A stretch of DNA of 61,445 nucleotides, counting the filler, from Basidiobolus meristosporus CBS 931.73 (taxonomy: Eukaryota > Fungi > Basidiobolomycota), in the NCBI GenBank assembly GCA_002104905.1. It is 4 parts of 4 records of this genome, joined end to end, with 100 filler letters (N's around TTAATTAATTAA, not from the genome) between each part and the next. Parts side by side here need not be neighbours in the genome. Positions count along the whole stretch, not along the records: positions 1 to 21,162 come from MCFE01000994.1; 3 more parts are not named here. One strand, given 5' to 3'. Below are positions 1 to 20,449 of this stretch, piece after piece. Each line of letters opens with the position of its first letter. Positions within the stretch are counted from its first letter, which is position 1. The notes below the pieces were generated by a model. That model did not search any database, was not told the DNA's origin, and was given only the letters and a program-made list of their open reading frames with translations. The translations under genes and the position numbers were made by a program.

Positions 1-985
1 AGGTGACAACTTAAAATACTACAGTGACCATAAGGAAACCTGGATATTCATTGATATTTTGCTAATATTACTCACTTTTAGGACTTGAAATTGCTGTCTC
101 TATGCAAATATGAAGTGACAACCAAATATTACTGGCTTGGTACTTGCAGACATCCACCATACTTAAATTACTGCATCAAGTATCAAAGCTTCTATCCATC
201 ATATGCTAAACCTGCTCCATATTCTTGAGCATAAGACATCTATTACATTTACTGTTAGTGTTTTATTCTTGGAAGCTAGTTCATCAATGCTGCTTGCTTA
301 CAGATGTATTGTATATTAAGCTTACTACTGGATATTTGGCTGTGCTGGGTGCTTCAGTAAAGTTAATTTTGATTTGCAAATGTTGCAAGATTCCAGGATG
401 AACCAGAAAGATCTGGGGAATTTGAACAGTCAAGTGTTTTTCACTTGCTGTTTTTTGAGTTCAGATAAACCAATGATTTGTCTGGCGATAAACAATTGAA
501 CTAATAAGAGCAATGCTCTAAGGAAGGTCCCAGAAAGTGGTGTGCCAAGCTCAAGTGCATTTTCAAGAGCTTGAAGATACTGACAACTTCTATACCTTCA
601 CTGATTATCAGAGTTAGTCATTATCTTACAAACCTAGTACCAGGTTCAAACTCCATAGTCAGGCAATAAACCAAGTGCAATGTTTTGCTCTATGGAAGAT
701 TAAGGGTGAATTCAATTATTGCAGTCACCATATGAGCTCCCAAGTATACAAGCTCACTTCAATTAGATTCTTTGATATGTTTAGCCCAAATGATCAGCTA
801 TGCGGTAGTTTTGTGCCAACAAGAATTGATCTGTAACAAACTCTAGATTGATTTTTTGGTCAGAGCATGTTCAGATGCATGTCAATGATTGAATCTGCAC
901 AAACACTACACATAGCTTTATGGCCATAGGAGTAAAGGGCTTGGCTACAGGCCATCAGATTCTTTCTTTGCTACTCAGGATTAAT

Positions 986-1196
986 AGACTTGTTCCATTG
1001 TGCCATTGATCATAGTGCCAGAAAGTGCTGTATATTTTGTTATTAATTTGATATTTTAGGGTCATATGCATGTCAGTTTTGATCCCAAATTGGCACTGTA
1101 TGGCACTATCTGGCACTCTGTGGCATGATCAGGCACCATCTGGCATGCTATGGCACTATTGGGCACTATGATCAGCTGGAATGATGGAACAAGTCT
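986..1196. mobile_element. 211-bp MITE of the PIF/Harbinger-like family also present at 46951-49707
   Basis: Perfect 13-bp TIR AGACTTGTTCCAT...ATGGAACAAGTCT, AAT on both flanks (3-bp TSD), internal TGGCACT subterminal repeats. Confidence 0.85.
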
Positions 1197-1399
1197 AATG
1201 TATAAAAGTTTCATGCCTTGTATTGAATTTAGTATTCTGTTCAGACTTATCTTTGTAAACTATATGCAATAGAGATCTCTGATATTGAGATTGCTGGAAT
1301 GATGTAATAAGTAAACTCTTTGCAATTTAACAGTCTTAGCTTCTCTGTTAGCAATACTGAATTTCCAGTAGCTGTGTACTTTGTGATGAGAACAGTGTG

Positions 1400-1751
1400 C
1401 CAATAGTTTTGCACAAATACAAACCTAATCCCAGAGTGGTTAGGAGAACAAGTAGACAATGTGGCTTTGACTTAGTAGTTGACTGAATGTATAAGAAGTA
1501 CTCCTACTTTTACATGGTTTTGACAATGCAAACATGTAGAATATGTTTAGGAAGGTCCCAAGTACATGTGTGAATGTTTAGGGCTCTCTGGGCAACTTTG
1601 ATAATTCCAGTGTTCTGGATACCTGATGTTCTTGGTGAAAATATTTCAAGTCCTATAAGGAATTTGGTCAGTGCTCACCATGACTTGAAGGTAATGATCT
1701 AAGTGACTATGATATGTGAATATTTAGGTGGAATTACCAATTTTGACAACA
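1400..1751 (-). mobile_element. Degenerate Ty1/Copia LTR (family of 50639-50987); left boundary approximate
   Basis: Reverse complement aligns by eye with the intact LTR (e.g. GGAAGGTCCCAAG, GGTGAAAATATT, GAATATTTAGGTGG); ends ...GACAACA. Confidence 0.75.
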
Positions 1752-3574
1752 GCCAAACACCAAAATCCTAAACATAGGCACTTGGGAGCTTTTGAATATA
1801 CTTTGCATAGTTTTCTTGTTGGCACCATGCAAATATATACACACTACTTCTACCATATAATAGTCATTCAGCAAGTACTGCAAAATCTACTTGTTCTGTT
1901 TATCACTTTAAATATCTCTGGAGCTCTTATGACACCATCTCCACAGGATTTAGAACTTTACAATAACAACTTACCACAACTGTTATGAGGCTGAGCGCAT
2001 TTAGATGGCCTCCCAATGATCAGCTTGTAGCTGTATGGTGACCATGTGGTGCTAGGCTGCTTTTACTGGGATTCTGCAAGTCTCTGGTCATAACCAGCAT
2101 TAGAGTGATGCTTGCAATGTTGTTATACTCCCCCTTTCAGACAATCTAGCACTTGAAATGCCACTTATAGTCTGCTGTATTAGATGGTATCCTACAAAGA
2201 GTGATTGAGAAAAGCCTGCAAAGTACCATCAGAATATCAGGTGAATTCTTAGATTCACAGTACCAACAACTCTTAATATCTTGTGCGTTGGTTGTGGGGC
2301 AGACCAGCAGATAAACTTTCAAGGAGGAGACTATGACAAGTGGTATTCATACCAAATTTGGTAATGAACTGCTCACTACTGCTATCAAAGATTACAACTG
2401 AAAATTTGAAGGAAAAACATAGGGTCAATACAAGCAAAATACTACTGGAACACCAGCACAATGATGGCTAAAATTCAGATGAATTTCAAGTCTGAGGTTT
2501 TTCATAGTAGAATTTTGCTGGCATTTAGCTGGTAATCTCCCTTGGTATTCCTGATTGTAAGTCTAAATGAAAGTAACACTTTTTTCCAGTTGATAGTGCC
2601 AAAGAGCACTATCCAGTGTATAGAGGCAGATCTATACAGCACTTTGTGGAATATTATGACATGGTAAAAAACTGAAAAAACCAATACTCCATGCTTCAAT
2701 TCTAGCATATTCAAAATATTAACAAAAATATTAAGCTATGCTTCAATGCAAAGGTTAGGTGCCGTACCATCCCAGTTGGACAACCAAGACAATGAATAAG
2801 TTATATACCTTGCAAGCTGCTTTACACAAAAATTAAGAAAAACAACCTGAGTCTCATCTAAAAAAGCTTACACTAGTGCAGGTGGTGGAGCATATTTGGT
2901 AATACTTGTCAGGATGGAGATTTCAAATGCATACCAGCCATAAGGCCCCACTATATATGCTTAGTCTGCTAAAGCCAATTGTTGGAATAGCCCACTGTGA
3001 AAATATACTGATGGAGAAAAATTTCATAACTTACCATTTTAGAGCAAAGAGAACCCCAGCTGATTGCTTGCCAAGCTTATTTCAAGAGGTCAAAGTAATT
3101 GCAACAAAAATATGCACTATGTTAAAGGAAAAAAGTAAAAAAAGCAACATCCAAGGACCATTATAATCTTATCACTATATGACCCTACTGCTTTTATGAG
3201 CAGAAAAGTTGGTAAAAACTACACAATGAGAATCAGAAGTAATATCCAAAGACTTGGTGAAAAATTCTAGGAGGTGTTGCCAGAAGGGTAGAAAAAGAAG
3301 TGGTGCAAGAAACCCATCATCAACATCACTGGGCTGCATATACCTGGCATCTAGTAAGGCAAAAATACACTGTACCACCCCTATACAGAAGAGTATAAGA
3401 AATTGCTCAGGAATACACACTACATATAAGATATCAGAATAATCTACATACAACTCACCTGGATCAAGATCATAATGCATGCAACTGGCCATTAAAAGTC
3501 CTAGGAATTCACTTCATGGAACCAATCAAACTACAAACCACAGAAGCAATATATACTAGTATTTTTGGACCACA

Positions 3575-4000
3575 CTACCAATGCAGAAGTTAACATTGAG
3601 TAAATTTTTGTGTGTTGGTGTAGTTTAAGTGACTCTAGATGAGGTTATTTTGTGATCACAAGAGCAAATCAGCAACAAACTATGTGTATTTCTTATTGCT
3701 AGCACTGGCTTAGATGTAAGTCCAATTGTTAATGAACACACTAATAACAAAATAAGCATAAGCATTACCTTACCATATAATGTAATGTACTATTGGCAAT
3801 TTAGCAGGACAGAAGAGAGTACAGGCAGTGGCACATCACATGTGACTCTATTGTTTAGGTTTGGTGAACTTTGTGTGACTGCTGCAAATATATCTTCAAA
3901 ACATAATGTATCATAGAGCTCAAGAGCTATATTTGGTCAGATGAAATTTAATGATGTATTTCTATTTCCATCTATGGATGCATATATTTTCCTTGGTTTG
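3575..4000 (-). repeat. Decayed inverted copy of tRNA-island spacers (3575-3735 = 20035->19875; 3735-4000 = 20350->20105)
   Basis: Long by-eye alignments, e.g. GTGACTCTAGATGAGGTTATTTTGTGATCACAAGAG vs GTGACTCGAGATGAAATTATTTTGTGATCACAAGAG and CATTACCTTACCATATAATGTAATGTAC vs CATTACCTTACCACGTAATGTAATGTAC. Confidence 0.85.
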
Positions 4001-4149
4001 TTACAATACTCACCACTAAGGGCTTTACACTCAAGTGCAAATTACAATCTAGACTCAGCTAAGCAATATAGTATTTATTAGCCAGCTCAAGGTACTGTCA
4101 GTACAGCTCTTGCCTAGATCCCAGAACATCCTTATTGACCCTTGAGAAC

Positions 4150-5810
4150 TCCTAATACCTTCCAAGACTTGAAAATAGCAAAACAGACATGTCTCACCCC
4201 AAATTTGAGTTGGTCAAAGATATGGAAGCATACATTGATCAGATGGAGGAGTAATTATTACGACTATCTATATCTAGCACAGAGCCAGTGAACAGACCAG
4301 TTGTAGGAATGCATTGAAACTAGCAAAACCAAATACTTTTGATGGAACCAAGAAGGCAATGATATTTGTATCTTGGATCTTTGAGATGGAACAATATCTT
4401 GCTTTTCAAACAAACCTGTAGTATTGAAAATCCAGTATGCAAGCTCCTTTTTGTGAAAAGAAGCAGCACTATGGTGGAAACCCCATAACCAAGGAATTGG
4501 TTGTAGAATACACCCAATTATTGTCACCTGGGACATATTCACCATGGGCTTACAAAAACAACTTATACCCTTCCACTTTGTACAGAATGCCTGTGATAAG
4601 TTGCACATACTAAAGCAAACAAAATCCATAACAGAGAACTACCAACAATTGAATCTGACAATGCTTAAGATTCCTGAAATGCCAGATACTAAACAGAAAG
4701 AATACTACCTCCGAGGACTCTGGCCTCAAATGTGACAAGCAGTAAAATTTCAGGACCCAAAACTCTCATCATTGCCATGACAATTGCAGAACAATATGAC
4801 TCAATCCACTTTAAGCCCTGCAATTACACTCCATGCCAGAAACCTTATACCCACCTCACCAAAAATATTAATAACCTCAGTAACTCATATGTAACTTTCA
4901 GAGTACCCAGTGTGGCCCCTATGAACCTTGATGTATCAGCTTTGTAGTGTTGAAGCAATATTTCAAAAGAAGAATGCCCTCACAAAGGACTGTGATTTTA
5001 TTGCAAAGAACATGGACATCTGATAGACAACTGTCAAAAGCACCTGCCAAACTAAAACCTGTTACCACAAATACAAATACTAAGACACAAACTACACACC
5101 CACTAACAATAGCAGACAATACCAGCCCATCTCTGACACTCAAATTGATGACATTAGATGAATTTATCTGCAGAAGCCTTGTCAGAGTATTGCTAGATAG
5201 TGGCACTGTAGATATATGCATAGCTGATGAATTGGTCACAAAATTCAACATTGAAAAGTACAGTACAAACCATTGATAATTCAATACAGCCAAAACTCTG
5301 TAACAAGTGAACCACCAAACTGTCCCTCAAAAGCTATCATTAGATAGTCTTGTATCTGAGATATTGCCAACAACCATCCCACAGGCTAAGCTTGATATCA
5401 ACCTGGGACAAAGTTGGCACTTAAAGTACAATGCAGAAATTGATTGGTATAGCCAGGAAGTCATGATCTACTAAGACAACCAATTCATCACATTAAGACC
5501 ATAAACAACCCTGCTGTCCCTGTTGGTAAACCCCAGATACCAACTATTAAAGAAGCAGAATACAAAGGCATGTGAACAAGCCAGTCCAAAGCCTAGACAT
5601 GGAGTTGTACATGAACAAACACATAGAATGCAAAAAAATGTCACCAAAGGAAGTGATGGAGATTTTCAACAGCACAGATATCTTAAAGGATGTGATGGTG
5701 AGCATGCACTATGTGGGGAGGAGTATACTGGAAATGCCCATAGCTTAGGGCAGGCAAGGCAAATAATATGCTATGCACATTACCCAAAGTAGGACTACAA
5801 AAAGACAGAT
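4150..5810 (+). mobile_element. Degenerate Ty3/Gypsy gag-protease relic related to the intact element at 12075-17452
   Basis: Broken frames resemble [16 protein letters not shown] of the intact Gag; ORF 4947..5276 contains the protease motif VLLDSGTVDICI; many stops. Confidence 0.75.
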
Positions 5811-7230
5811 TCCAAATACATACCAACCTACACCTTATATAGTGCTTTGTGTATAGCACACTGGATTATGCTAAATGGGTGGGACCAACAAGAATCTCTT
5901 AAGAGGCCAAGATGGACCAGATTATCTTGCAACCAATATGTATTGCAATGGGAGTGAGCAGATTGGCACCATCACAATTACTCTGAAAAATATGCAACCT
6001 GCCGTCAATGAGCCTACTATTGGCCTGGAGAAGAGCCAAATTCATGAGTAGGTACCCTTACACACTCAGAGACCATTTGAGTCATTGGATAAACAGACAT
6101 GCTAAAGGGCACATATTGGTCCACACCACACTGAGTGATCTTGCAAGATGACTAATATGGCAAAGCAAAGGCAGGAAGAAACTGGCAACCTTAAAATTAA
6201 GATGTACAAGAGGCATGGAGCAAACTACCAATTGGCAAAGTAGCTAGGTTGGATGGGAAAACAATAGAAATACCACAATTTCTGGACTGGGACAAGAAAC
6301 TCAGTAAGAAATTTGCCAAAACCATTTCAATACTAGTACAGAAAGCATTGGAATTAGGATATACACCCTCCAATTGAGGACTAGTATAATTTCTACCTCT
6401 ATACAAGAGAAAAGGGGATAAAAAAATATTGTAAACCACCATCTAATATTACTATTTAACATACTAAGATAGCTATTTGAAAAAAGAGCCAAACTATGTA
6501 CAGCAGACCAATCTTGATCAATTAGACATTATGCAAGGAGGATTCCAAAAAAGGCAGGGTACACTAGATTGATTAGTAAGCTTCCAGTATAGTTTGCAAC
6601 ATTTAAACATAAACAATGGAAATATACAAATAATACTACTGGACATTGTGACAGCATTTGACCCCACAAACAGACAAATGTTATGGAAGATATGCCAAGG
6701 AAAAGGACTTGCATGGTGCTCACCAGAGTAATGGCTAGCCTGTACAACCAATGTGATATCTGGATAATAGTAGACAGGAACTTAACTGAAGCAGTAGACA
6801 ACCAGGTGGGTATACTGCAGGGATCACTACTGAGCCCCCTGCAATTTGGGAAATTTTGGATGCTTTACTGGAACACCTGAGGTGCTGAGAGGATGGCCTA
6901 CAAATCCATCACAACCTACACATCAATGCTAAACTATATGTGGACAATGTGATATGTATAGTGCAATGGGATAAGGCACAAGACTTCCTACACAAATGTG
7001 AATTGCATTCAGCACAGAATGTATACAAAAGGAAGCCAGAAAAATGTATTGTATACAACAGGAAGATATAGGAGGTGAGGGGCTCACAATCAATAATACC
7101 CCAATACCAGTGGACAATAAGGCAGTGTACCATGGGGCATTCATAGATAAGCAAGGATTGATTGTAAGCAACAGATAAAGCTCAGGGCTACCAAGGCAAA
7201 TAATATATTATGCATACTATACAAAGTAAG
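5810..7230 (+). mobile_element. Degenerate non-LTR retrotransposon (LINE) reverse-transcriptase relic
   Basis: ORF 6683..6880 contains GILQGSLLSPL (LINE RT QGxxLSP motif); surrounding frames interrupted. Confidence 0.7.
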
Positions 7231-7231
7231 A

Positions 7232-7480
7232 TTATGCAAAGGAGGCATCATGTTGCATATTTTGTGGACAGTTTTGAGTTAGGTGGCCAACTTTTTTGTA
7301 TCTGTTGCAGATGGGAGGTGGATTTTTCCATCTGATGGTTATCATTATTTCCATAATGTGGGGACATTGGGGTATGTTGTGTAACATGTCCATGCTTTGA
7401 CTGATGTCCAGGATTGCCCTAGCAGTACCCATGGTGATTAGTGTATTGGGATAAACATGTTTTTTGATAGCACTGTAGTG
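7232..7480 (-). pseudogene. Retroelement ORF1/gag relic with decayed zinc knuckle
   Basis: WKNPPPICNRYKKVGHLTQNCP = CX2CX4HX4C with second Cys decayed to Tyr. Confidence 0.55.
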
Positions 7481-7481
7481 G

Positions 7482-8277
7482 TATAGGGGTACTCCTGGGA
7501 GAAGCTACACAACTCAAGGTATATAAGGTGTCTGATGGGTGCATTAACCTCTGGGTTTAAACTGCTGCTGTCTTTGTAAATTTGTCGCTATGATAAATGC
7601 TCCTGCTTCACTAGCTTCCTAGTTGCTCCAAGTGTCTCCAAAGGCCTCTGTGTGTCTTGTGTACTCCCCTAAAAGCTCCTTGATGACAAGTCCAGGATGT
7701 AACTGTATAAAGTAGGTGCAGTCATCACCTGCATATCAATAAGGGAGAAGTGCTACTGATAAAAGGGATGATTTACTGAGGAGAGGTTGACTTCCATCAA
7801 GTACTTTTCCTGATTGCTAAGTGACTACTAATGACAAGGTTCTAGAAGATTCCAGGCATCAGTGGAAATCTTGATGACATTGCTGAAAGCTAAAAATACT
7901 CCAAGAAGGTCCTAGAAGGTTCTAAAAGGCACAGCACATCCAACCAATTGGGGATCAGTAGTCTCAAACCTGTGTACCACAGAAATACCATATATGGGAT
8001 TGTAATGGTAGGGATGGTAACAGAGACTTAGGCCATGTATCATGGGTACTGACATAAGTACTTGCCTAATGTAGATATATATACCAATCACAAAACTGAA
8101 TAACATTTGGGATAACTAATGTTAATAACTAATCAGGGTAAACATCATACGAGGACAATACTGATAATATGGGCAAAAGAAGAATGGGATAATACAGATA
8201 AGATAAAATATGGATAAGTGCATCATAATTGCTGTATGGATAAACTTATCTGTGGGAGGTATGCTTACCCTACCACA
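7482..8277 (-). mobile_element. LTR of the family also found at 32968-33619 and ending at 44156
   Basis: Long inverse alignment with 32968-33619 (e.g. CCCATTCTTCTTTTGCCCATATTATCAGTATT) and direct similarity to 43690-43950; no clear TSD here. Confidence 0.7.
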
Positions 8278-8867
8278 GCATTAATTTCTCCATATGTGTG
8301 GAGAAAAGGTCTTAGGTGCTCAGTTGGTTGAGGTATGGACCAAAGTGAAAGATCTGATAAGTGCAAGATAAGCAGATGTTCATTTGTTTAATATATTTGT
8401 TGGAAAGGAATAATAACATTGTTCCATTCAAAAGTGTTGTTAGAAAGATTTTCCATAATATCAGGATGAGAGAAGGCAATAAGGCAACAAGATGGGTTGT
8501 GGTTGAACTTGATTCCAGTTATTTGGTTTGGGACAGTTGCTGACATCCAATTGATAATCTCATTAGGTGATAAGTGGCTTAGCAAAGTTGTATCAAGGCT
8601 TATGGAGTGTTCAGTGTTTGCTTATAAGATTGGCTCATAGCTAGCAATATCACTGGTCATTGTGGAACAAGGAAAAGGTGGCTTGTGATAATTGTGTGCA
8701 ACAATTTGAGATCAGACTGGATTGGGGGGTAGAGGTGAAGCAATTTGTTCATTTGCTGAACTGGTGGTGGACATTTATGTACTCTCATAAAAAGGCCATT
8801 GCCCACACCACCAGGTATCATCAGACCCAGTCTTCAACTAAACCTATCATCCAAATAGCCAAAAAAA

Positions 8868-8939
8868 ATCTCAAACTGGGAATTGAACTCAAATCTCCTG
8901 TGTGACAGGCAGGGATCCTTACCACTATACTATCTGAGA
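8868..8939 (-). pseudogene. tRNA-Asp(GTC) pseudogene
   Basis: Aligns full length to the intact gene at 19440-19511 with 11 differences; 9 are C>T/G>A and all 5 CpGs are destroyed; flank 8776-8867 matches 19512-19600 inverted. Confidence 0.9.
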
Positions 8940-9312
8940 GGGGAATGACTGTTCACTCTTGTGCCTAGTCATTCAACCACATCTTTTATAGGCACTGTCA
9001 CACAGATTCAAGACAGGATGAAACTAGAGGGATGCCACCCACTAAATCAAAGACAGGAAGGTTTACAATCCAAAACAGAAGAGGTAACAGAACACATGCA
9101 ATGCTCCAAATGGAATATGTTTGACTCCATAAGACTGGATGGAACAGAGGCTAGAATAAAGCCAAAACATATATTTGACAATCCAAAAAAACAGTAAAAT
9201 TCAGATGCCAAGCATCAGTACCAGGAGCCAGAAACAAAAGGGAAATATGCAACTGTACATACAGCAAAAACACAATAATGCCAATCCTTAAAAAGTACAA
9301 AAAAAGAAAACA

Positions 9313-10386
9313 TTGTTGGAAATTAAAAATAAAAAACAAAGTAACAACTGGAATCAAGAGGAAGAGACAGTCCAGGAAACAGAAGGAACAGGGACCATTT
9401 CAGAAGAGACAGACCACAAGTATAGTGGACCAACACAGATACAAGGAAACAACAAGAATATAAACTATAGGGAACCATGGGAGGCAAGAGGGAAGACAGA
9501 GGAAAGGGAGTTGATGGTAACTCTGACAAAACTAAACTGGCAGGGAGAGAAGGAGGGAAACAGACTGATAGAAAACGGGGAAAAGGAGATAATCAACAGA
9601 GAGAGGATGGAAAAAGAGCAACCAGTACAACAGAAAAGTCCCATCTGGTACACAACCCTACAATGGAATGTAGAAGGAGAAGGGGAAGAGCAAAGGAACG
9701 AGGTCACTACCAAGGAAGGAACAAGAATGTGGGAAAGAATCAGGGAGATAGAAAAGCAAATGGGCAAGTTAGCAAAGGAACTAGAGGAGATAAACAAAGG
9801 GATCAGTAAAGGGAACCCTATGAAGGGCGAAAATGATATAAAGAGGGGACACAGGAAGGATACAGAGGAATTCTCAACAAGAGCTGGAGAAGTTGAGACC
9901 ACATCAATATACGCCGAAACACTCAAAAAAACGTCATCGACAAATATAATGAGAAAGACACCAGCAACAAGCATCCACCAGGATGGAAATCTGGGCAATC
10001 AACAGAAACTACAAAACAGGCTGCGAGAGCTCAAGAAGACAAACAAAACCTCTCCAACTCAAAATCTAAACATGGAATCGTGCATGAACAAACATATAGA
10101 ATGTACAGAAAAATCGTTAAAGGAGGTAATGGAAATTTTCAACAGTACGGGTATCACTAAAGACATGATCGTGAACATGCACTACGTTGGAAGGAGTATA
10201 CTGGAAATACTTATCCCCGTAGAGCACATTCTGATAGTGGAAAAAACACTGGGGGAGGCGGATCTCAAGCTCAAGGACCCACCAAATCCTTGCATAACAC
10301 AGGGAATGGGTGCAAGATTCCAACACATGAATTCAGAGGAAAAAAGAGAGTGCGCCAGGGAGCTGGCACAAAACAGAATCAAATGA
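9313..10386 (+). CDS. LINE ORF1-like protein (true start uncertain, 5' part decayed)
   Basis: 357-aa open frame, A-rich coding strand, coiled-coil-like MWERIREIEKQMGKLAKELEEINKG, directly upstream of the APE ORF. Confidence 0.55.
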   Translation: MLEIKNKKQSNNWNQEEETVQETEGTGTISEETDHKYSGPTQIQGNNKNINYREPWEARGKTEERELMVTLTKLNWQGEKEGNRLIENGEKEIINRERMEKEQPVQQKSPIWYTTLQWNVEGEGEEQRNEVTTKEGTRMWERIREIEKQMGKLAKELEEINKGISKGNPMKGENDIKRGHRKDTEEFSTRAGEVETTSIYAETLKKTSSTNIMRKTPATSIHQDGNLGNQQKLQNRLRELKKTNKTSPTQNLNMESCMNKHIECTEKSLKEVMEIFNSTGITKDMIVNMHYVGRSILEILIPVEHILIVEKTLGEADLKLKDPPNPCITQGMGARFQHMNSEEKRECARELAQNRIK

Positions 10387-10534
10387 CAGATTTTCTGGGA
10401 CAACGTAGCTGGTAGATGGTACTGGTGGTACGCAAAAACCTTAGGACTGGAAACGGGCAACCTTGAGAAATGCACAACAGAGAACCAAAGTAGACAACAA
10501 AACAAACAGGAGAATCGATTGAATCAAAGATTGT

Positions 10535-11041
10535 AAAATAGTTTTTGCCAATCTGAATGGGGCAAGAAATAAGATGAGTTAAATTAACAATTTTTTGGAC
10601 GTCCACAATGTCGACCTAGTTATGGTAAATGAAACGTGGTTGGTTCATTGTCCTAGGAGCTATTTCCAGGACAGACTAATACTACACAAACCGGCAAAAA
10701 CACCAAAAAAAGAAGGAGATGGGGGACGACCAAACGGCGGAATGATAATCCTCAGAAAGAGCATATTAAAACAACCAATCTGTCAAATGGAGTATGACCA
10801 TCCGGATTGCGACGAAGTAATAGTGCAAGTGGGAGACACAACAATATCGTTTAATTACCTCAAACCCACAGATAACAAGGAATTACTGAAGGAACAATTC
10901 ACACACAACGGAAATAACAAAAACCCAAATATATGGTTGGGTGATTTCAACGCAAGACTAGGAGAACTTGCCAACGATAGCAGAAGTAACAAAAAGGGGA
11001 CGGCGCTTAGAAAAATAATGACACAATACGCACTTAATAGA
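10535..11041 (+). pseudogene. LINE ORF2 N-terminal APE endonuclease, disrupted and truncated
   Basis: KIVFANLNG...*INNFLDVHNVDLVMVNETW...GGMIIL...NYLKP...IWLGDFNARLG; in-frame TAA at 10580-10582; ends before the C-terminal DH motif and RT. Confidence 0.85.
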
Positions 11042-11072
11042 GCGGGGATACTTACCACTATACTATCTGAGA
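11042..11072 (-). pseudogene. 5' 31-nt fragment of tRNA-Asp(GTC)
   Basis: Exact reverse complement of 19440-19470; the rest of the gene is replaced by LINE sequence. Confidence 0.9.
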
Positions 11073-11519
11073 AGATATCTATCAAGTGAAATATTTAATT
11101 TATAACGCACACTATTTAATACTTGGTAAAGCATATTAGGGAGGCTATTGGGCTGGCAAAAACAATTTGAACAATTAGCCTACGTATGAAAATACATTTT
11201 CCCCTCTCCCACCCATCTATGATGTGTGTCAATTTCCCCCAGCTGCACAGTGTATATCTTCTGACTCAGTAAAAACATACACACGATATTTACTACACAA
11301 TAAAATGGGTATATTGCTGCAACGTTGTTGGCCTTTGATTGTACATTGATTAGATTGAATTCAATAAAAATCACAATTTCTACTTTGAGCACTGATTGAC
11401 AAATAAGCGCTAAAATGGATTTACTCATGAATAAAGTACCATACAAGTGACCATCCGACTTCCATTCAACACCCTGCCCCCTACTCCAACTAAATACTGC
11501 ACACAGAAAAAGGTAAAAA

Positions 11520-11593
11520 TGCTCACAGCAGGGGTCGAACCTGCAACCTTGGCGTTATTAGCACCACGCTCTAACCAACTGAGCTATGCGAGC
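11520..11593 (-). tRNA. tRNA-Ile(AAT), left-arm copy
   Basis: Cloverleaf GCTCGCA..TGTGAGCA, anticodon loop CT-AAT-AA, GGTTCGAC T-loop; one CpG transition vs 18921-18994. Confidence 0.93.
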
Positions 11594-11598
11594 ATATA

Positions 11599-11680
11599 CG
11601 ACAACAGCAGGATTTGAACCTGCGCGGGCAGAGCCCATATGATTTCTAGTCATACGCCTTAACCACTCGGCCATATTGTC
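11599..11680 (-). tRNA. tRNA-Ser(AGA), left-arm copy
   Basis: GACAATA..TGTTGTCG, loop CT-AGA-AA, long variable arm; identical to 18834-18915. Confidence 0.95.
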
Positions 11681-11785
11681 TGATATATCAATCCTTCTCT
11701 CTTTAAATATATGACTAAACATTTAACATGATCTTATTTAATAAAGTATGTTGAAGCTATTGTTTTCTAAAAATCGCAGAAAATT

Positions 11786-11857
11786 AGGTCTCGCCGAGAA
11801 TCGAACTCGGATTACAGGATTCAAAGTCCTGGGTGCTAACCATTACACCACGAAACC
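11786..11857 (-). tRNA. tRNA-Gln(TTG), left-arm copy
   Basis: GGTTTCG..CGAGACCT, CAGGA-CT-TTG-AA-TCCTG; identical to 18657-18728. Confidence 0.95.
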
Positions 11858-11982
11858 AGCAACTACCTGTTATAAGCTAATCTATATTATACTACTTACT
11901 CACTCATAATCTTGCATTAAATATTTATTTCTGTAGCCCGCCAATGAAGAATACAATGAAGGGGCTGTGAACCAAAAAGGAT

Positions 11983-12065
11983 TGGTAACAGTGAGATTTG
12001 AACTCACACCTCTTACGAGACCGCAACTTGAGTGCGGCGCCTTAGACCAACTTGGCCATGTTACC
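11983..12065 (-). tRNA. tRNA-Leu(CAA), left-arm copy with three CpG transitions
   Basis: GGTAACA..TGTTACCA, CGCA-CT-CAA-GT-TGCG, variable arm; differs from 18449-18531 at three former CpGs. Confidence 0.88.
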
Positions 12066-12074
12066 GTATATTAC

Positions 12075-12384
12075 TGTTATGAATCAAGGGCAAGCGGAGG
12101 AGGACCGGAGGATGTCCAATACGGATCAGAGAGGTTATCTGAATAGTTGATGAACCGGTAAAAGGTTGATGCTTTATTGATAGTGCTCAAAGGCGTTTAT
12201 ATAGAGATAGCCTCGGAGGGAGAGCTTCCGATAACATAGGGCAAGCTTCCAAAAGGAGGGTTCAAGATGTATTAAATAACGTGTGTATCACTGAGTGCGA
12301 TTGATTGTCTGTGTGCAATTCCAGGTGTTCGATCAGTAGTGTTCAAGTGATCGGTAGTGACTAGTTAGGATTTAAATCATAACA
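12075..12384 (-). repeat. 3' LTR of the Gypsy element
   Basis: TG...CA with 8-bp terminal inverted repeat; 7 differences from 17143-17452 by eye. Confidence 0.95.
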
Positions 12385-12395
12385 TACTCCCACAC

Positions 12396-15300
12396 TTAAA
12401 GAGGTTCTTCTCCTGAAGAGTCCTGTCTATCGGACTTGTAATACCAGTATTTGGTTGGTGGTGTCATTGGATTTTTTAGCTGTGCTTCCTTTAGTCGGTC
12501 TCTATGTACGAGGTCCTCCTTTACTTTACCTGACATGTCTGCGAGTTGAAATGTATTGAAGGGCATTTCTCTTGTGATAATAAAGGGTCCAACCCAATGT
12601 GGTTCTAGTTTTAGCCTACTTTCATTTCGGACTAATACAAGTTTTCCCAAAGTTAAGGGTTTTGTTACCACTGTTTTGTTGTACTGTTCTTTCATCTTCT
12701 CTGCTTGTTGTTTTAAATTCTTGATGGCATCATGTCTTGCATGTCCTAATTCTTCCAGTTCCCTTGTTCTGAATTCCGCCAAGTCTTTTTGGTTCTTTAA
12801 GTCCCAGATGTATGGTGGTAAGGTATCACCTGGGATTCTTGGATGTGTACCATACACTAGGTAGAAGGGGGACTTTTGTGTTGCTGAATGGACTCTAATA
12901 CGACAGGCAAAGAGTGCTTGATGTACAAATTCATCCCACTTATGTTTGGCTCCTTTGACATAAGTAGTCAGCATCTTCCCAAAGAGTCCATTGAACCTCT
13001 CTGTAACCCCATTTGTTCTAGGGTGGTATGCTGATGTCTTCAAATGTCTAACCCCCATTATCTGAAGGTATTCTTTCAAGGTTTGTTCCAAAAAGTTTGC
13101 TCCTCTGTCAGACAGAATTTCACCTGGGCATCCAAACTGCATAAAGATTTCCAGGTAAAGGAATTTTGCAACATTTTTTGCAGTAGCTGCTGGCATGGCT
13201 TTTGCTATACACCACTTAGTGGTATGGTCAATTGCAGTTATGATCCACTTGTTCCCTCTTGAAGTTTCAGGCAAGATTTCAATGAAGTCAATTCCCCATC
13301 TGTAGAATGCTGGAACTGGAGTCAGTGGTTCTAATGGGGCATGTTCCTTGTTGTATGGTCTAGCCAGCTGGCACTCAGGGCAGGTCTTGAGGGTCTCAGC
13401 TATAAATTGTTTGAGTTTAGGCCACCAGGCTCTCCTTTTAGTTATTTCATAAGTTCCTTGGATGCCCCGATGTCCAAAGGCTTTATGATTCTTGATTATC
13501 ATGTCACCTCTGTATACAAATGGAATATATGGTACAGGCCCTATTTCTTCCATGTGTCTGTAAAGTACCTCGTCTTCACCATATGAGAAATTCTCTGCTT
13601 CTTTCTTAATTTTGGCCCTTACTTCCTGTGATAAATCTTCTGGCATTGTCTGACTTGCCAAGTACTCTGGCATGTATTCTGGCCAGTCCAACTCATGATC
13701 TACCATTGATATATGTTGCCTTGAGAGTGCATCAGCAACTGTATTCTTTGGCCCAGGGAGGTAGTGGATTTTAAAATCAAATTGTTGTAGTTCTTCAATC
13801 CATCTAGTTATTCTCCTGGATAATAGCTTCTGGGTGTGAATGTATCTTAGGGATGCATGATCTGTATATACCACAAAGTGTTTGCCCTCCAAGTAGCATC
13901 TCCACACCCTCAGACAATGTAGTATGGCATAGAGTTCTTTTTCATGGACTGGGTAGTTTTGTTCAGTTACTGATAGCTTTTTGGACTCATAAGCAACCGG
14001 GTGTTCTTTTTGAGTCAGTACCCCTCCAACAGCTAGATCTGAAGCATCAGTGTATACACAGAAAGGTTCTGAGAAATCAGGCAACTGAAGCACAGGAGTT
14101 TGGCATAGCTTTTCTTTCAGAGTTAGGAAAGCTGTCTCACAGTTTGGGGTCCATATATAGTCTTTCTCTTTTTTGGTCAAGTCTGTAAGGGGGGCTGCAA
14201 TAGTTGCAAAGTCCCTGATGAATCTTCTGTAATATGATGCAAGTCCCAGGAAGGATCTCATTTCAGTGAGTGACTTTGGGGCTTCCCATTTCTGGATAGC
14301 ATCTATCTTGGCTGGATCCATGTGTAGTCCTTTATCTGAGATTATGTGACCAAGGTATTCAACTGATCTGGTGAGGAATTCACACTTAGGAAGTTGTGCA
14401 TATAGCTGGTGCTTTTTTAGTATAGCCAGTACTGTCTTCAAGTGCTTCATGTGGTCATCCATGCTGGTACTATAGATCAGAATGTCATCTAAGTAGACCA
14501 GGACAAATTTCTCTAAATATGGTTCTAGGATGCTATTCATGAGTGTCTGAAATGTTGCTGGGGCATTAGTCAGGCCAAAGCTCATCACAACAAACTCATA
14601 ATGACCATATCTTGTGTTGAATGCTGTCTTAGAGGTGTCTTCAGGCTTAATTCTGATTTGGTGATATCCAGATGCTAGGTCTATTTTAGAGAATATCTTT
14701 GCCTTCCCCAGTTGGTCAAAGAGGGCATCAATTCTTGGTAATGGGTAGGAATTTCTGACAGTGATTGCATTTAGGGCCCTGTAGTCCACACAGAACCGTA
14801 GCTTCCCATCCTTCTTTGGAGCAAAGAGTACTGGAGCTCCCCATGGTGATTTACTGGGTTTTATCCAGCCTTTAGCCAGGTAGTCCTTCAATGTTTCCTT
14901 CAAAGTATCCATTTCCTTTGGGGAGAACTTATATGGGGCTCTGTTTCTTGGTTTATCATCTGTTACTTCTATGGCATGGTCAATCTCTCTGCTTGGGGGT
15001 AGTGCAGGGATTTCCTTGGGAAAAACCTCTTGAAACTCTGCTAACAAGGTCTTGAGCCTGACATTTGTCACTTCTGTGGTCTCTTGGATTTTGGCAAAGG
15101 CTATCATGTGCAACAGTTTGGGATTCTGTCTGATAGAGTGGGCAAACTGTTTCTTTGATATGGTGTGTTCTGGTGCATTGCCTTTGTCCAGGGTTGGTTT
15201 GGGTGACAGATGATATTTTGCATCTTCCTTGTTGATTACAACTTCCTGAGTCTGCCAGTTTATGTCAGGATTGTGCTTTCTTAGCCAAGTTTGTCCCACA

Positions 15301-16745
15301 TTGATTTCAAAGTTGGCTTGGGGTATGATAATTGGGGAAATGGTGTCTTGGAAGTCCCTGATTTGTAAAGTCAAGGGTTCAGTCCTGCTGTTCACTATAA
15401 TTGATTCCTTGGTGGCACAGAGGATGTGAATTGGGGGGCAAGGGATTGTTTGTAGCTTCATCTGATCAGCTACATCTTTTGAAATGTAGACATCAGTTGC
15501 TCCACTGTCAATGAGTACAGAGACACATTGGTTGTTGTTGAGAATCCCTGGGAGTTTCAGCATCTTTGGGGTAGTATATAAGCTCTGAGTCCTCTGATAC
15601 TCCTTAACAAGGCTGATTGTGTGCTCCTCCTCCTTAGTGGAGAGTTGGAATACTCTTTGTAATGGCCTCTTTGGGCATTCATTGACTTTATGACCCTGTT
15701 CCTTGCAGTAAAAGCATAGTCCAAGCTTGAAGCATTCCTCTTTAGAAGGTCTTGGTGTGCTCTGCATAACATCTAGGTCCATAGGCTCCAGTGTTTGGGG
15801 GTAGTGTGCACCTTGTTCAGTGATTGGTTGACTACTAATAGGTATGTGGTTATTGGCTTTGAAGCCTGTAGTAGTTCTTGAGTGACCAATTCTGTGGTTG
15901 ACAGCCCTTCTGAAGTGTATGGCATCATATCTTTCTGCCAGTTCCATAGCCTCTACTAGGGTTTTGGGGTCTTTGTATTCAATTTCCCATCTAGTGTTGG
16001 ATTTCAGGCCTCTTAGGTATTGCTCAAGTAGTTCAGTATCAGGCATGTTTTGAATTTCCATACTAAGCAAGTTAAACTGCTCATTGTACTCTTGAACAGA
16101 CTTGGCTTGAAAGAGTTTGGACAGTTTTTCTCTTGCCATTCTATCAGCATTGATAGGTGTAAACCTCTTTCTCAATGCTTTAACAAAGTCAGCCCAGGAG
16201 GCTATGGGTGGAAAGATGCCCCTATTCATTCCTTGAATGTGAAGTTTCCACCACATGGTTGCTTCCTTTCTGAAAAGTGAACAGGCATAATGTACTTTGA
16301 CTTCTTCAGAGTCATCTGAGAAGTATAGGTACTGCTCTACTTCAAATATCCAAGTCTCTAGAGTGGCAGTGTGTCTTTTGCCTTCAAAGATGTTGGGTTT
16401 CTGAAGTTTCAGATTTGTTGCTCTATATTGTTTTGTGAAGTCCAGAGAGCCTTGCCCATCTTCTCCAAGATTCAAGGAATTGGGAGGCACCGCAGGTCTT
16501 ACAGATGAGGCTTCACCCTCTCTCTGTATACCTTGACCAGTAAACCATGATCTCTGGGTGTTCACAAAATGTAAAGAGTCCAAGTCTGTCTGCCTACCCA
16601 TTCTTGGGTCCAGACTAGGGAGGGCCGCAGGCTCAGTTGTGTGGGACTGTCCTTGACCGGCTAACTCAGCAACTTGTTGTTCAAGACTCTCAATATAGGC
16701 CAACATTTCTTCTGAAGAGCTAAATTTTGGCTTTTCTTCACTCAT
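12396..16745 (-). CDS. Gypsy Gag-Pol polyprotein, single open frame of 1449 aa (Gag, CCHC, protease, RT, RNase H, integrase)
   Basis: [14 protein letters not shown]; VLIDSGAT; YLDDILIYS; VYTDASD..ELYAI..VYTDH; H..GH..C..C zinc finger; WGIDF/SDRG/TERFN DDE; GPF motif; no obvious chromodomain. Confidence 0.97.
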
Positions 16746-16930
16746 TTTGTTTTTGGGTATTGTTTGATTTGCGGTAGGCGGGTGTGTTTACCAAGGGGGC
16801 TGGTTCTCTGGCAGAATTGACTGGGTACTGTTTTTTTTCTTTTTTTGAGTGAAACGGAGGGTTTCTCTGGGAGGTTGGGAGGGTCTCGGGCAGGTACGGA
16901 GGGTATCTCTGGACAATTGGAAGAATATCT

Positions 16931-17090
16931 GGGAGATCGGAAGAGTTTCTGGGAGATCGGAAGAGTTTCTGGGAGATCGGAAGAGTTTCTGAGAGATTGG
17001 AAAAGTTTCTGGGAGATCGGAAGAGTTTCTGAGAGATTGGAAAAGTTTCTGGGAGATCGGAAGAGTTTCTGAGAGATTGGAAAAGTTTCT
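16931..17090. repeat. Eight 20-bp tandem units in the Gypsy 5' leader
   Basis: A=GGGAGATCGGAAGAGTTTCT, B=GAGAGATTGGAAAAGTTTCT, order A A A B A B A B. Confidence 0.95.
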
Positions 17091-17130
17091 GGGAGGTACG
17101 GAGGTTTTTGTTTTTTGGAGATCGGAGGTT

Positions 17131-17141
17131 CGCTGCTACCA
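17131..17141 (-). promoter_or_regulatory. Gypsy primer-binding site, probably initiator tRNA-Met 3' end
   Basis: TGGTAGCAGCG one nt inside the 5' LTR, complementary to an acceptor end ...CGCUGCUACCA; the iMet assignment is inferred from typical iMet acceptor stems. Confidence 0.75.
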
Positions 17142-17142
17142 A

Positions 17143-17452
17143 TGTTATGAATCGAGGGCAAGCGGAGGAGGACCGGAGGATGTCCAATACGAATCAGAGA
17201 GGTTATCTGAATAGTTGATGAACCGGTAAAAGGTTGATGCTTTATTGATAGTGTTCAAAGGAGTTTATATAGAGATAGCCTCGGAGGGAGAGCTTCCGAT
17301 AACGTAGGGCAAGCTTCCAAAAGGAGGGTTCAAGATGTATTAAATAACGTGTGTATCACTGAGTGCGATTGATCGTCTGTGTGGAATTCCAGGTGTTCGA
17401 TCAGTAGTGTTCAAGTGATCGGTAGTGACTAGTTAGGATTTAAATCATAACA
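17143..17452 (-). repeat. 5' LTR of the Gypsy element
   Basis: 310 bp, TGTTATGA...TCATAACA. Confidence 0.95.
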
Positions 17453-18147: not shown

Positions 18148-18448
18148 TTTTATTTTAGTGGTTGTCAGATCAGTACAGCCCACAGACTTGCATTCAAGGT
18201 GCAAATGAACCACATTTTGAAAGTGCATTACTAGATAGCGTGTGTTCTCATACAAGCACAATCTGGCATCGTTGGTAGCTTTGTGTTTCCTTTTGTTACA
18301 AGCTATTTGGCAATAATTAACGACCACTGAAAATTGACGAATTTGGAAGTTCTTTTAATCACAAAAAAATTAGTATCGAGTGACATGAACACTCTAGGTT
18401 TGCGAACCTTTCTAGTCGTAAGAAAAATATGAGATGGATGTAATATAC

Positions 18449-18531
18449 GGTAACATGGCCGAGTTGGTCTAAGGCGCCGCACTCAAGTTGCGGTCTCGTA
18501 AGAGGCGTGAGTTCGAATCTCACTGTTACCA
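18449..18531 (+). tRNA. tRNA-Leu(CAA)
   Basis: GGTAACA..TGTTACCA, CT-CAA-GT loop, variable arm CTC-GTAA-GAG, GTTCGAATC, TTTTT terminator. Confidence 0.96.
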
Positions 18532-18656
18532 ATCCTTTTTGGTTCACAGCCCCTTCATTGTATTCTTCATTGGCGGGCTACAGAAATAAATATTTAATGC
18601 AAGATTATGAGTGAGTAAGTAGTATAATATAGATTAGCTTATAACAGGTAGTTGCT

Positions 18657-18728
18657 GGTTTCGTGGTGTAATGGTTAGCACCCAGGACTTTGAATCCTGT
18701 AATCCGAGTTCGATTCTCGGCGAGACCT
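18657..18728 (+). tRNA. tRNA-Gln(TTG)
   Basis: Canonical cloverleaf, CT-TTG-AA loop. Confidence 0.96.
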
Positions 18729-18833
18729 AATTTTCTGCGATTTTTAGAAAACAATAGCTTCAACATACTTTATTAAATAAGATCATGTTAAATGTTTAGT
18801 CATATATTTAAAGAGAGAAGGATTGATATATCA

Positions 18834-18915
18834 GACAATATGGCCGAGTGGTTAAGGCGTATGACTAGAAATCATATGGGCTCTGCCCGCGCAGGTTCAA
18901 ATCCTGCTGTTGTCG
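18834..18915 (+). tRNA. tRNA-Ser(AGA)
   Basis: Canonical cloverleaf with long variable arm, CT-AGA-AA loop. Confidence 0.96.
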
Positions 18916-18920
18916 TATAT

Positions 18921-18994
18921 GCTCGCATAGCTCAGTTGGTTAGAGCGTGGTGCTAATAACGCCAAGGTCGCAGGTTCGACCCCTGCTGTGAGCA
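18921..18994 (+). tRNA. tRNA-Ile(AAT)
   Basis: Canonical cloverleaf, CT-AAT-AA loop, TTTTT terminator directly after. Confidence 0.96.
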
Positions 18995-19439
18995 TTTTTA
19001 CCTTTTTCTGTGTGCAGTATTTAGTTGGAGTAGGGGCAGGGTGTTGAATGGAAGTCGGATGGTCACTTGTATGGTACTTTATTCATGAGTAAATCCATTT
19101 TAGCGCTTATTTGTCAATCAGTGCTCAAAGTAGAAATTGTGATTTTTATTGAATTCAATCTAATCAATGTACAATCAAAGGCCAACAACGTTGCAGCAAT
19201 ATACCCATTTTATTGTGTAGTAAATATCGTGTGTATGTTTTTACTGAGTCAGAAGATATACACTGTGCAGCTGGGGGAAATTGACACACATCATAGATGG
19301 GTGGGAGAGGGAAAATGTATTTTCATACGTAGGCTAATTGTTCAAATTGTTTTTGCCAGCCCGATAGCCTCCCTAATATGCTTTACCAAGTATTAAATAG
19401 TGTGCGTTATAAATTAAATATTTCACTTGATAGATATCT

Positions 19440-19511
19440 TCTCAGATAGTATAGTGGTAAGTATCCCCGCCTGTCACGCGGGAGACCCGGGTTCAATTCC
19501 CGGTCTGAGAG
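19440..19511 (+). tRNA. tRNA-Asp(GTC)
   Basis: TCTCAGA..TCTGAGAG, CCCGC-CT-GTC-AC-GCGGG, GGTTCAATTCC, T-runs after. Confidence 0.96.
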
Positions 19512-19779
19512 TTTTCTTTTGGCTATTTGGATGATGGGATTAATTGAAGGTTGGGTTTGATGATACGTGATGGTGTGGGCAATGGCCTTTTTATGAAAGA
19601 ACATAACAGCTAGTAGACATCACAATGCTATCGAGTGAATAATCAAATAAACTATTGTATTGCAGAGGATATGCACTGATTGCAGCCATCATGTCTAGAG
19701 CTTATCATGCCATGAAACTTACAAAAGTAAGTTTGAGTATTAGTATTCCGAGTAACATGGAACATAAAAAATTGTTGTA

Positions 19780-19852: not shown

Positions 19853-20024
19853 ATGTACAGTCATATTGGAGGTCGGATCATTAACAATTGTACATACATC
19901 TAAACATGTGCTAGCAACAAGAAAGATCTATAGTTTGTCGCTGATCCTCTCTTGTGATCACAAAATAATTTCATCTCGAGTCACTCGTACTACACCAACT
20001 TACAAAAAGTTACTGAATGTGAAC

Positions 20025-20096
20025 TTCCGCATCGGGGAATCGAACCCCGGCCTTCTCGGTGAGAGCGAGAGATCCTGACCACTGGACCAATGCGGA
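20025..20096 (-). tRNA. tRNA-Glu(CTC)
   Basis: TCCGCAT..ATGCGGAA, TCTCG-CT-CTC-AC-CGAGA, GGTTCGATTCC. Confidence 0.96.
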
Positions 20097-20449
20097 TATT
20101 CTTGAACCAGGGAAGATTTATGCGTCCATGGATGGACATGTAACTGAACTGTTGTATTTCATTCGGCCAAGTATAGTTGTTATACTTTGGAGGTGTATTT
20201 GCGGCAGTCATGCAAAGCTCACCGTAGCTACACAATAGAGTCACATGTGATACGCTACTGCCTGTACTCTTTTCTGTCTTGCTCAATTGCCAATGGTACA
20301 TTACATTACGTGGTAAGGTAATGCCTATACTTATTTCGTTATTAGAGTGATCCGGTCATCTGGGATGATCAATCTCAAGGGGAGAAGGGGCTTGGGAATA
20401 AATCTATTACGTTACATCTCTGATTATTGCGTTGCTCCCTTTATCAAGT

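Follow-up and report, generated by a model that had tools for sequence, protein, structure and literature searches.

A 3′-truncated L1-like LINE between two copies of a tRNA-Asp segment in Basidiobolus meristosporus, and the probably secondary origin of its 3′ junction

We analyzed a 61,445-nucleotide stretch of DNA from the fungus Basidiobolus meristosporus CBS 931.73 (assembly GCA_002104905.1; the whole stretch is called the window below), in whose first 21,162-base piece (MCFE01000994.1) a truncated long interspersed nuclear element (LINE) is joined on both sides to sequence of a tRNA-Asp gene. The window carries an old inverted repeat of a tRNA cluster, and the LINE lies in its left arm. 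Left and right arm compare as filled and empty site, with the geometry of a 31-nucleotide (nt) target duplication of tRNA-Asp nt 1–31. The insert is the 5′ part of an APE-type LINE, consisting of a leader, open reading frame (ORF) 1 and part of the APE endonuclease domain, and its two flanks have different histories. The account that we favor, and to which we give about an even chance, is that a real LINE landed at or in the 5′ part of tRNA-Asp, and that the 3′ junction arose afterwards, through repair of a break or conversion with the other arm as template.

According to ARAGORN, the 21,162-base piece contains 16 tRNA genes. The direct repeat that brackets the LINE (8909–8939 and 11042–11072) corresponds to nt 1–31 of tRNA-Asp(GTC) on the minus strand, and its two copies are identical at 29 of 31 positions, as a preliminary description of this locus had proposed. 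The repeat is not a chance match, because it is part of a gene that is also present uninterrupted in the other arm of the inverted repeat. The locus is laid out as follows.

Left arm, filled site: LINE 8940–11041 (plus strand) between a full, decayed tRNA-Asp at 8868–8939 (minus strand) and Asp nt 1–31 at 11042–11072 (minus strand)
8775–8867, minus strand: old downstream flank of the left-arm tRNA-Asp, homologous to 19512–19606
8868–8939, minus strand: tRNA-Asp(GTC), full-length but decayed (ARAGORN, Rfam); its nt 1–31 (8909–8939) are the left repeat copy
8940–9513, plus strand: A-rich leader, probably the 5′ untranslated region of the LINE, beginning where homology to the other arm ends (tRNA nt 1)
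9514–10386, plus strand: LINE ORF1, 290 codons from the first in-frame ATG; the open frame spans 9313–10386
10523–11041, plus strand: ORF2 APE endonuclease, N-terminal ∼172 codons, cut before the domain end (Pfam, tblastn, alignment)
11042–11072, minus strand: right repeat copy, tRNA-Asp nt 1–31, identical to 19440–19470 and joined directly to the truncated APE domain
11042–12074, minus strand: “young” segment comprising Asp nt 1–31, the upstream spacer, tRNA-Ile, tRNA-Ser, tRNA-Gln and tRNA-Leu; pairs with 18440–19470
19440–19511, plus strand: intact paralogous tRNA-Asp of the right arm, the “empty site” (ARAGORN, Rfam, alignment)

Homology of the left repeat copy to the right arm ends exactly at tRNA nt 1 in the alignment. 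The right copy runs on into the native upstream flank of the Asp gene and then into the Ile, Ser, Gln and Leu genes (11519–12065, minus strand), and ARAGORN locates the same series, Leu-Gln-Ser-Ile-Asp, on the plus strand at 18449–19512. The inverted pairing of 11042–12074 with 18440–19470 is made up of three adjoining matches and amounts to 99.3% identity over 1033 columns. The right side of the LINE is thus the 5′ half of tRNA-Asp with its native upstream flank, in agreement with the preliminary description.

The leader shares no match with the Asp upstream flank of the right arm and has an AT skew of +0.5, like the rest of the element; it probably belongs to the LINE. Downstream of it, the longest open run in a sense frame comprises 364 codons (the maximum in 2000 shuffles is 217), and the annotated ORF1 product P0001 (259 amino acids) falls within this frame (9313–10386). 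A sister ORF1, ORX94166.1, is encoded on a 127-kb scaffold of the same strain and is 96% identical to the window ORF1; it is known as a protein only. The twelve differences between the two are mostly of the C>T/G>A kind. The window ORF1 ends with a TGA at 10384–10386 where the sister copy has an arginine, and beyond it the frame continues without a stop to 10536 and overlaps the beginning of the APE frame, so that native ORF1 is probably ∼50 codons longer. ORF1 proteins of the L1/Tx1 group combine a coiled coil with an RRM-like fold; for the window ORF1, we found no Pfam match and, in a single-sequence search, no PDB match. Its AlphaFold model is unusable (mean predicted local distance difference test score 38.5), with a long helix predicted at residues 37–68.

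The APE piece matches Pfam Exo_endo_phos (PF03372) with an E-value of 1.7e-5, above the family cut-off, and aligns by tblastn to residues ∼17–186 of LINE ORF2 proteins. A multiple alignment reveals the conserved GDFNAR motif; an in-frame TAA interrupts the frame at 10580–10582. Aligned relatives continue for a further ∼55–60 residues, the end of the domain with the SDH motif, all of which this copy lacks. A single-sequence PDB search with the APE piece returned nothing useful. An alignment profile recovered human L1 endonuclease with E-values from 1e-18 to 2e-15, followed by R1Bm (1e-3) and TRAS1 (0.02), and the element would accordingly be placed with the L1/Tx1-like group, as judged from an incomplete APE domain without reverse transcriptase (RT). 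No RT is present between 8940 and 11041, and there is no A-rich or repeat tail at 11041; the element does stop inside the APE domain as originally described. Absence of RT is no argument against a LINE family, as it is due to truncation of this particular copy. We considered whether the missing 3′ part lies elsewhere in the window and rejected this, since tblastn gave no matching RT beside a tRNA-Asp remnant.

One further piece of the same family is found in the window.

5587–5735, plus strand: second fragment of the LINE family, from the C-terminal part of ORF1, cut on both sides and CpG-decayed

Compared with 10060–10208, this fragment has 79% nucleotide identity and 70% amino acid identity (tblastx). 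A word search with ORF1 returned its own cluster only, and the APE piece has no relative above 39% identity among 1.84 billion representatives, the best being 30–39% identical. Scans of metagenomes with protein patterns and with a 21-mer common to both window fragments yielded no further copies, nor did scans of viral contigs and of contigs from prokaryote genomes. An Atlas search with ORF1 gave a weak indication of early-diverging fungi, and one with the polyprotein of the gypsy element described below yielded no taxon. The family thus counts at least two young copies and the 150-nt fragment at 5587–5735. We conclude that it is low-copy, recently active and L1-like, and that it is most likely a family of Basidiobolus meristosporus. 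The suggestion of an undescribed fungal LINE family holds, given the 96% identical sister ORF1 and no other relative above ∼39% identity, although the element is of a known kind.

Comparison of the two flanks with the right arm revealed that they have diverged to very different extents. The left tRNA-Asp (8868–8939) is still called by ARAGORN and scores 39.9 bits with the Rfam tRNA model, compared with 63.6 bits for the intact gene at 19440–19511; it is the full but decayed gene that had been expected on this side. The 11 differences between the two genes comprise the loss of all 5 CpGs, 4 other transitions, one T>G and one G>T. The adjoining flank 8775–8867 differs from 19512–19606 at 12 of 95 columns (10 substitutions and a 2-nt indel); these substitutions run in both directions, include transversions and form an ordinary spectrum. 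On the other side of the LINE, 11042–12074 differs from 18440–19470 at 7 of 1033 columns (5 substitutions and two 1-nt G indels), which bears out that the outer left flank is the more diverged of the two. Each of the five substitutions is a CpG transition that occurs only in the left copy of the young segment; TCG is the context in four cases (p = 0.03), and the 1031 bp contain no other substitution. Over the 107 bp adjoining the junction at 11041/11042, the two arms do not differ.

When C>T/G>A changes in the left copy are set aside, 8 substitutions in 95 bp remain in the left flank, compared with 0 in 1031 bp in the young segment (Fisher p = 2e-9). The same contrast is seen closer to the insertion: the left Asp gene has two transversions in 72 nt (p = 0.004 compared with the young segment), and the left 31-nt repeat copy carries one T>G transversion and one CpG loss, whereas the right copy equals the right arm (one transversion in 31 nt compared with none in 1031 bp, p = 0.03). 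Across the LINE, non-CpG divergence from the other arm shifts from ∼10% to ∼0%. A later rearrangement that made the right junction, which the preliminary description had listed as its alternative, fits this divergence step and the 107 identical base pairs better than a single insertion does. Copying of the young segment would have been very recent, as only the private CpG transitions set it apart from the right arm. We rejected the LINE insertion as the start of the divergence of the outer arm, since its ORF1 is open for 364 codons and has a 96% identical sister copy, which makes the LINE far younger than the ∼10% divergence of the flank.

The five private CpG transitions also bear on the possibility that the 11041/11042 join is an assembly artefact and is not present in the genome. 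The piece is a whole 21-kb contig made of repeats only, and the two 1-nt G indels between the arms resemble homopolymer read errors, both of which would fit an artefact. The private transitions, however, identify the young segment of the left arm as a real, separate locus and not a duplicated read, and at the join the LINE has no sequence in common with the tRNA by which an assembler might have been misled. We therefore consider an artefact highly improbable.

How could such a structure have formed? In the account that we favor, an L1-like LINE would have landed, in head-to-head orientation, at or within the 5′ part of the left-arm tRNA-Asp, inside the old inverted repeat. The 5′ junction (8939/8940), at which the leader abuts tRNA nt 1, is probably the original insertion junction, because tRNA nt 1 is the precise limit of homology to the right arm and because the leader, apparently complete, is compositionally continuous with ORF1. 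The 3′ junction (11041/11042), at which the middle of the APE domain abuts tRNA nt 31, is probably secondary, because a truncation at the wrong end, a missing tail and the jump to 100% identity all meet at this point. Target-primed reverse transcription begins at the 3′ end of the RNA, and loss of the 3′ part is therefore the wrong loss for this process. A break inside the LINE may have been repaired by copying the intact right arm, or the inner arm segment may have been re-copied or converted in some other way, in the case of conversion with a tract ending at the heterology. With either event, the remainder of ORF2 and the LINE 3′ end would have been lost, and a fresh copy would have been made that runs from Asp nt 31 to nt 1 and on through tRNA-Leu. 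The data show how the locus is built, that its APE domain is partial, that the two flanks differ in history and that a sister copy exists; it is the order of events and the mechanism of repair that we infer here. Secondary truncations are common in the window: they include the 150-nt piece of the LINE family cut on both sides, a gypsy gag-protease fragment and a gypsy element with non-matching flanks (the latter two are described below).

The 31-nt repeat is thus a real duplication in the comparison of filled and empty site, yet its length need not be that of the element's target-site duplication. Of the original claim of a 31-bp target duplication, the geometry relative to the intact paralogue stands; the origin of the repeat is ambiguous. 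We also rejected a chimera formed by template switching onto a tRNA, as the tRNA pieces are antisense to the LINE and retain their genomic flanks.

Several points weigh against a secondary 3′ junction. Compared with the empty site, the filled site has precisely the geometry of a target-site duplication, and a secondary junction would need to have fallen, by coincidence, just 31 nt away from the position that corresponds to the 5′ junction. We saw neither microhomology nor a tail at 11041/11042, and thus nothing at the junction itself that points to a particular repair route. The boundary between old and young sequence could predate the LINE inside the conserved tRNA-Asp body, for example if conversion tracts are anchored in tRNA genes, and a one-step insertion with a 31-bp duplication would therefore be rescued. 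Finally, the interpretation rests on one assembled copy.

One-step insertion would involve a sequence-specific LINE endonuclease that makes one nick in the sense strand of tRNA-Asp, after nt 31, and a second in the opposite strand, at nt 1; a single event of target-primed reverse transcription, using a 3′-truncated or internally primed RNA, would then create the 31-bp duplication and regenerate the full gene. It would account for the clean 31-nt duplication and for the position of the LINE 5′ end at tRNA nt 1. The APE domain is L1/Tx1-like, a group that includes known target-specific lineages (Dewa, Keno, Mutsu; PMC3706591), the family has been recently active to judge from the 96% identical sister ORF1, and the step in divergence, if located within the conserved body of the gene, could be older than the insertion. 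Against this, the case rests on a single junction pair, the element lacks its 3′ two-thirds and any tail, the step in identity falls at the 11041/11042 junction, and the searches for further copies came back blank. The other family fragment in the window (5587–5735) does not lie beside a tRNA-Asp, which is a weak objection given that it is cut on both sides. The scenario needs a pre-existing boundary between old and young sequence in the gene body as well as a truncated or internally primed RNA, both of which are possible and neither of which is supported, and we regard it as quite unlikely. With one junction pair, the proposed nick of tRNA-Asp near nt 31/32 finds no support, and copying from a truncated RNA in trans is an ad hoc addition for a junction without a tail.

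The more general proposal, namely a Basidiobolus family of L1/Tx1-like LINEs that cuts inside tRNA-Asp (at nt 1 of the antisense strand and after nt 31 of the sense strand) and rebuilds a full gene beside each insertion, appears to us distinctly improbable. Specificity for tRNA-Asp, resting on one truncated copy in a tRNA-dense, rearranged region, is doubtful to the same degree; with 16 tRNA genes in 21 kb, a chance landing in a tRNA gene is not rare.

Alternatively, neither junction may come from retrotransposition, and the structure may have arisen by replicative template switching or by segmental rearrangement at the tRNA gene, for example from a donor locus in which the LINE already lay beside a tRNA-Asp. 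The window is a mosaic of broken elements, and the young segment is bounded by a truncated LINE and by a long terminal repeat (LTR) without matching flanks, neither of which has canonical hallmarks. Against this, an original 5′ junction more simply explains why the break falls precisely at tRNA nt 1 beside a leader and ORF1 that seem complete, and two precise switches would be needed. We consider this origin unlikely, although it carries some weight.

Known LINEs with a preference for tRNA loci provide partial precedents. Dictyostelium TRE5-A, which is guided by the RNA polymerase III complex, is a LINE with two ORFs and an APE domain that inserts ∼47 bp upstream of nearly all tRNA genes and generates target-site duplications of variable length (PMC5391098). 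Its 5′ end is reported to face the 5′ end of the tRNA gene (PMC5391098), which is also the orientation of our single copy, although one copy establishes no rule of fixed orientation and distance. TRE5-A stays outside the gene, in contrast to a distance of 0 and a duplicated stretch inside the gene here. NLTR-A from Dictyostelium purpureum, which inserts 2–6 bp upstream of tRNA genes (PMC5391098, PMC5006619), comes closest as a precedent for a LINE that ends almost at tRNA nt 1; unlike our element as interpreted here, NLTR-A stays out of the gene, and it has an RNase H domain. The Tx1-clade elements Dewa, Keno and Mutsu resemble our element in being APE-type LINEs, with the APE domain here being nearest to the L1 type; they insert at one position in multicopy small-RNA loci. 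Dewa targets the spacer of tRNA-Leu arrays and not the tRNA body (PMC3706591), and the specificity of the Tx1-clade elements rests on many copies at one site, compared with one copy without RT in our case. Dada DNA transposons do insert at fixed positions inside tRNA genes (PMC3706591), but they are DDE transposons with 6–7-bp duplications and an unrelated mechanism. Endonuclease-independent L1 insertions at double-strand breaks, which bear no signs of endonuclease action, have been connected with the repair of breaks and with rearrangement (PMC1920257); they are accompanied by loss of target DNA, whereas a 31-bp duplication is seen here.

The literature compared here did not reveal any LINE whose insertion site is fixed within the body of a tRNA gene. 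The tRNA gene body has been predicted to be ideal for target-specific elements, the cited cases being the Dada DNA transposons. If our element were to insert at a fixed position within the body of a tRNA gene, it would be the first LINE known to do so and would represent a new sequence-specific endonuclease from an early-diverging fungus; if the family cut tRNA-Asp at a fixed nucleotide, tRNA gene bodies would join the short list of LINE targets. On present evidence, the locus would rather serve as an example of a misleading duplication between filled and empty site, in which one flank was re-copied from a paralogous arm.

The LINE also spans a sharp change in CpG content. The CpG observed/expected ratio is 0.00–0.04 in 1–8939, 0.73 in the young segment (11042–12074) and 0.85 in the right arm (18440–19470). 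Within the LINE, CpG counts are as follows.

8940–9575: 0 found, 24 expected
9576–9900: 3 found, 14 expected
9901–10400: 13 found, 22 expected
10401–11041: 21 found, 25 expected

We rejected the CpG boundary as a marker of either junction, as the CpG-free zone ends as a gradient of ∼300 bp inside the LINE (∼9576–9900). The boundary resembles a domain edge, mutational or chromatin-based. Taken together, the CpG pattern and the losses in TCG context point to a methylation- or repeat-induced-point-mutation-like process, with a domain edge near active tRNA genes. Such a sharp transition from CpG-free to CpG-normal sequence beside a Basidiobolus tRNA cluster merits attention in its own right.

Further out in the inverted repeat, the tRNA-Glu region at 3578–3998 pairs with 19878–20352 at 76–83% identity. 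Between this outer part and the Asp flank, the left arm holds ∼4.8 kb of broken elements compared with 272 bp in the right arm, and tRNA-Arg is missing from the left. In the inner part, tRNA-Ser(AGA) and tRNA-Ile(AAT) lie only 4 nt apart in both arms (11594–11599; 18915–18920) and resemble a dimeric tRNA gene. Three other elements could be assigned; Pfam searches with ten other ORFs of the window returned nothing useful.

4314–5609, left arm: gypsy gag-protease fragment
6201–6856, left arm: LINE RT remnant (tblastn), another fragment and the only LINE RT remnant in the window
12075–17452, minus strand: intact Ty3/gypsy LTR retrotransposon, bounding the young segment on its far side

After the 150-nt ORF1 fragment, and again after the LINE RT remnant, comes a 63-nt direct repeat (5742–5804 and 7179–7241; the copies are 76% identical) that may belong to a LINE 3′ region. 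The intact gypsy element has 310-bp LTRs that are 97.7% identical and a gag-pol ORF of 1449 amino acids with capsid, protease, RT, RNase H and integrase domains (Pfam); its best protein relative is only 40% identical. The distance between one LTR end and the 5′ end of tRNA-Leu(CAA) is 9 bp, and the element thus has a Ty3-like location at the RNA polymerase III start. It is flanked by two different pentamers, ATTAC and CGCTA, a mismatch suggestive of recombination between two copies. Between its 5′ LTR and gag, the element contains approximately eleven tandem copies of a 20-nt unit (16888–17115).

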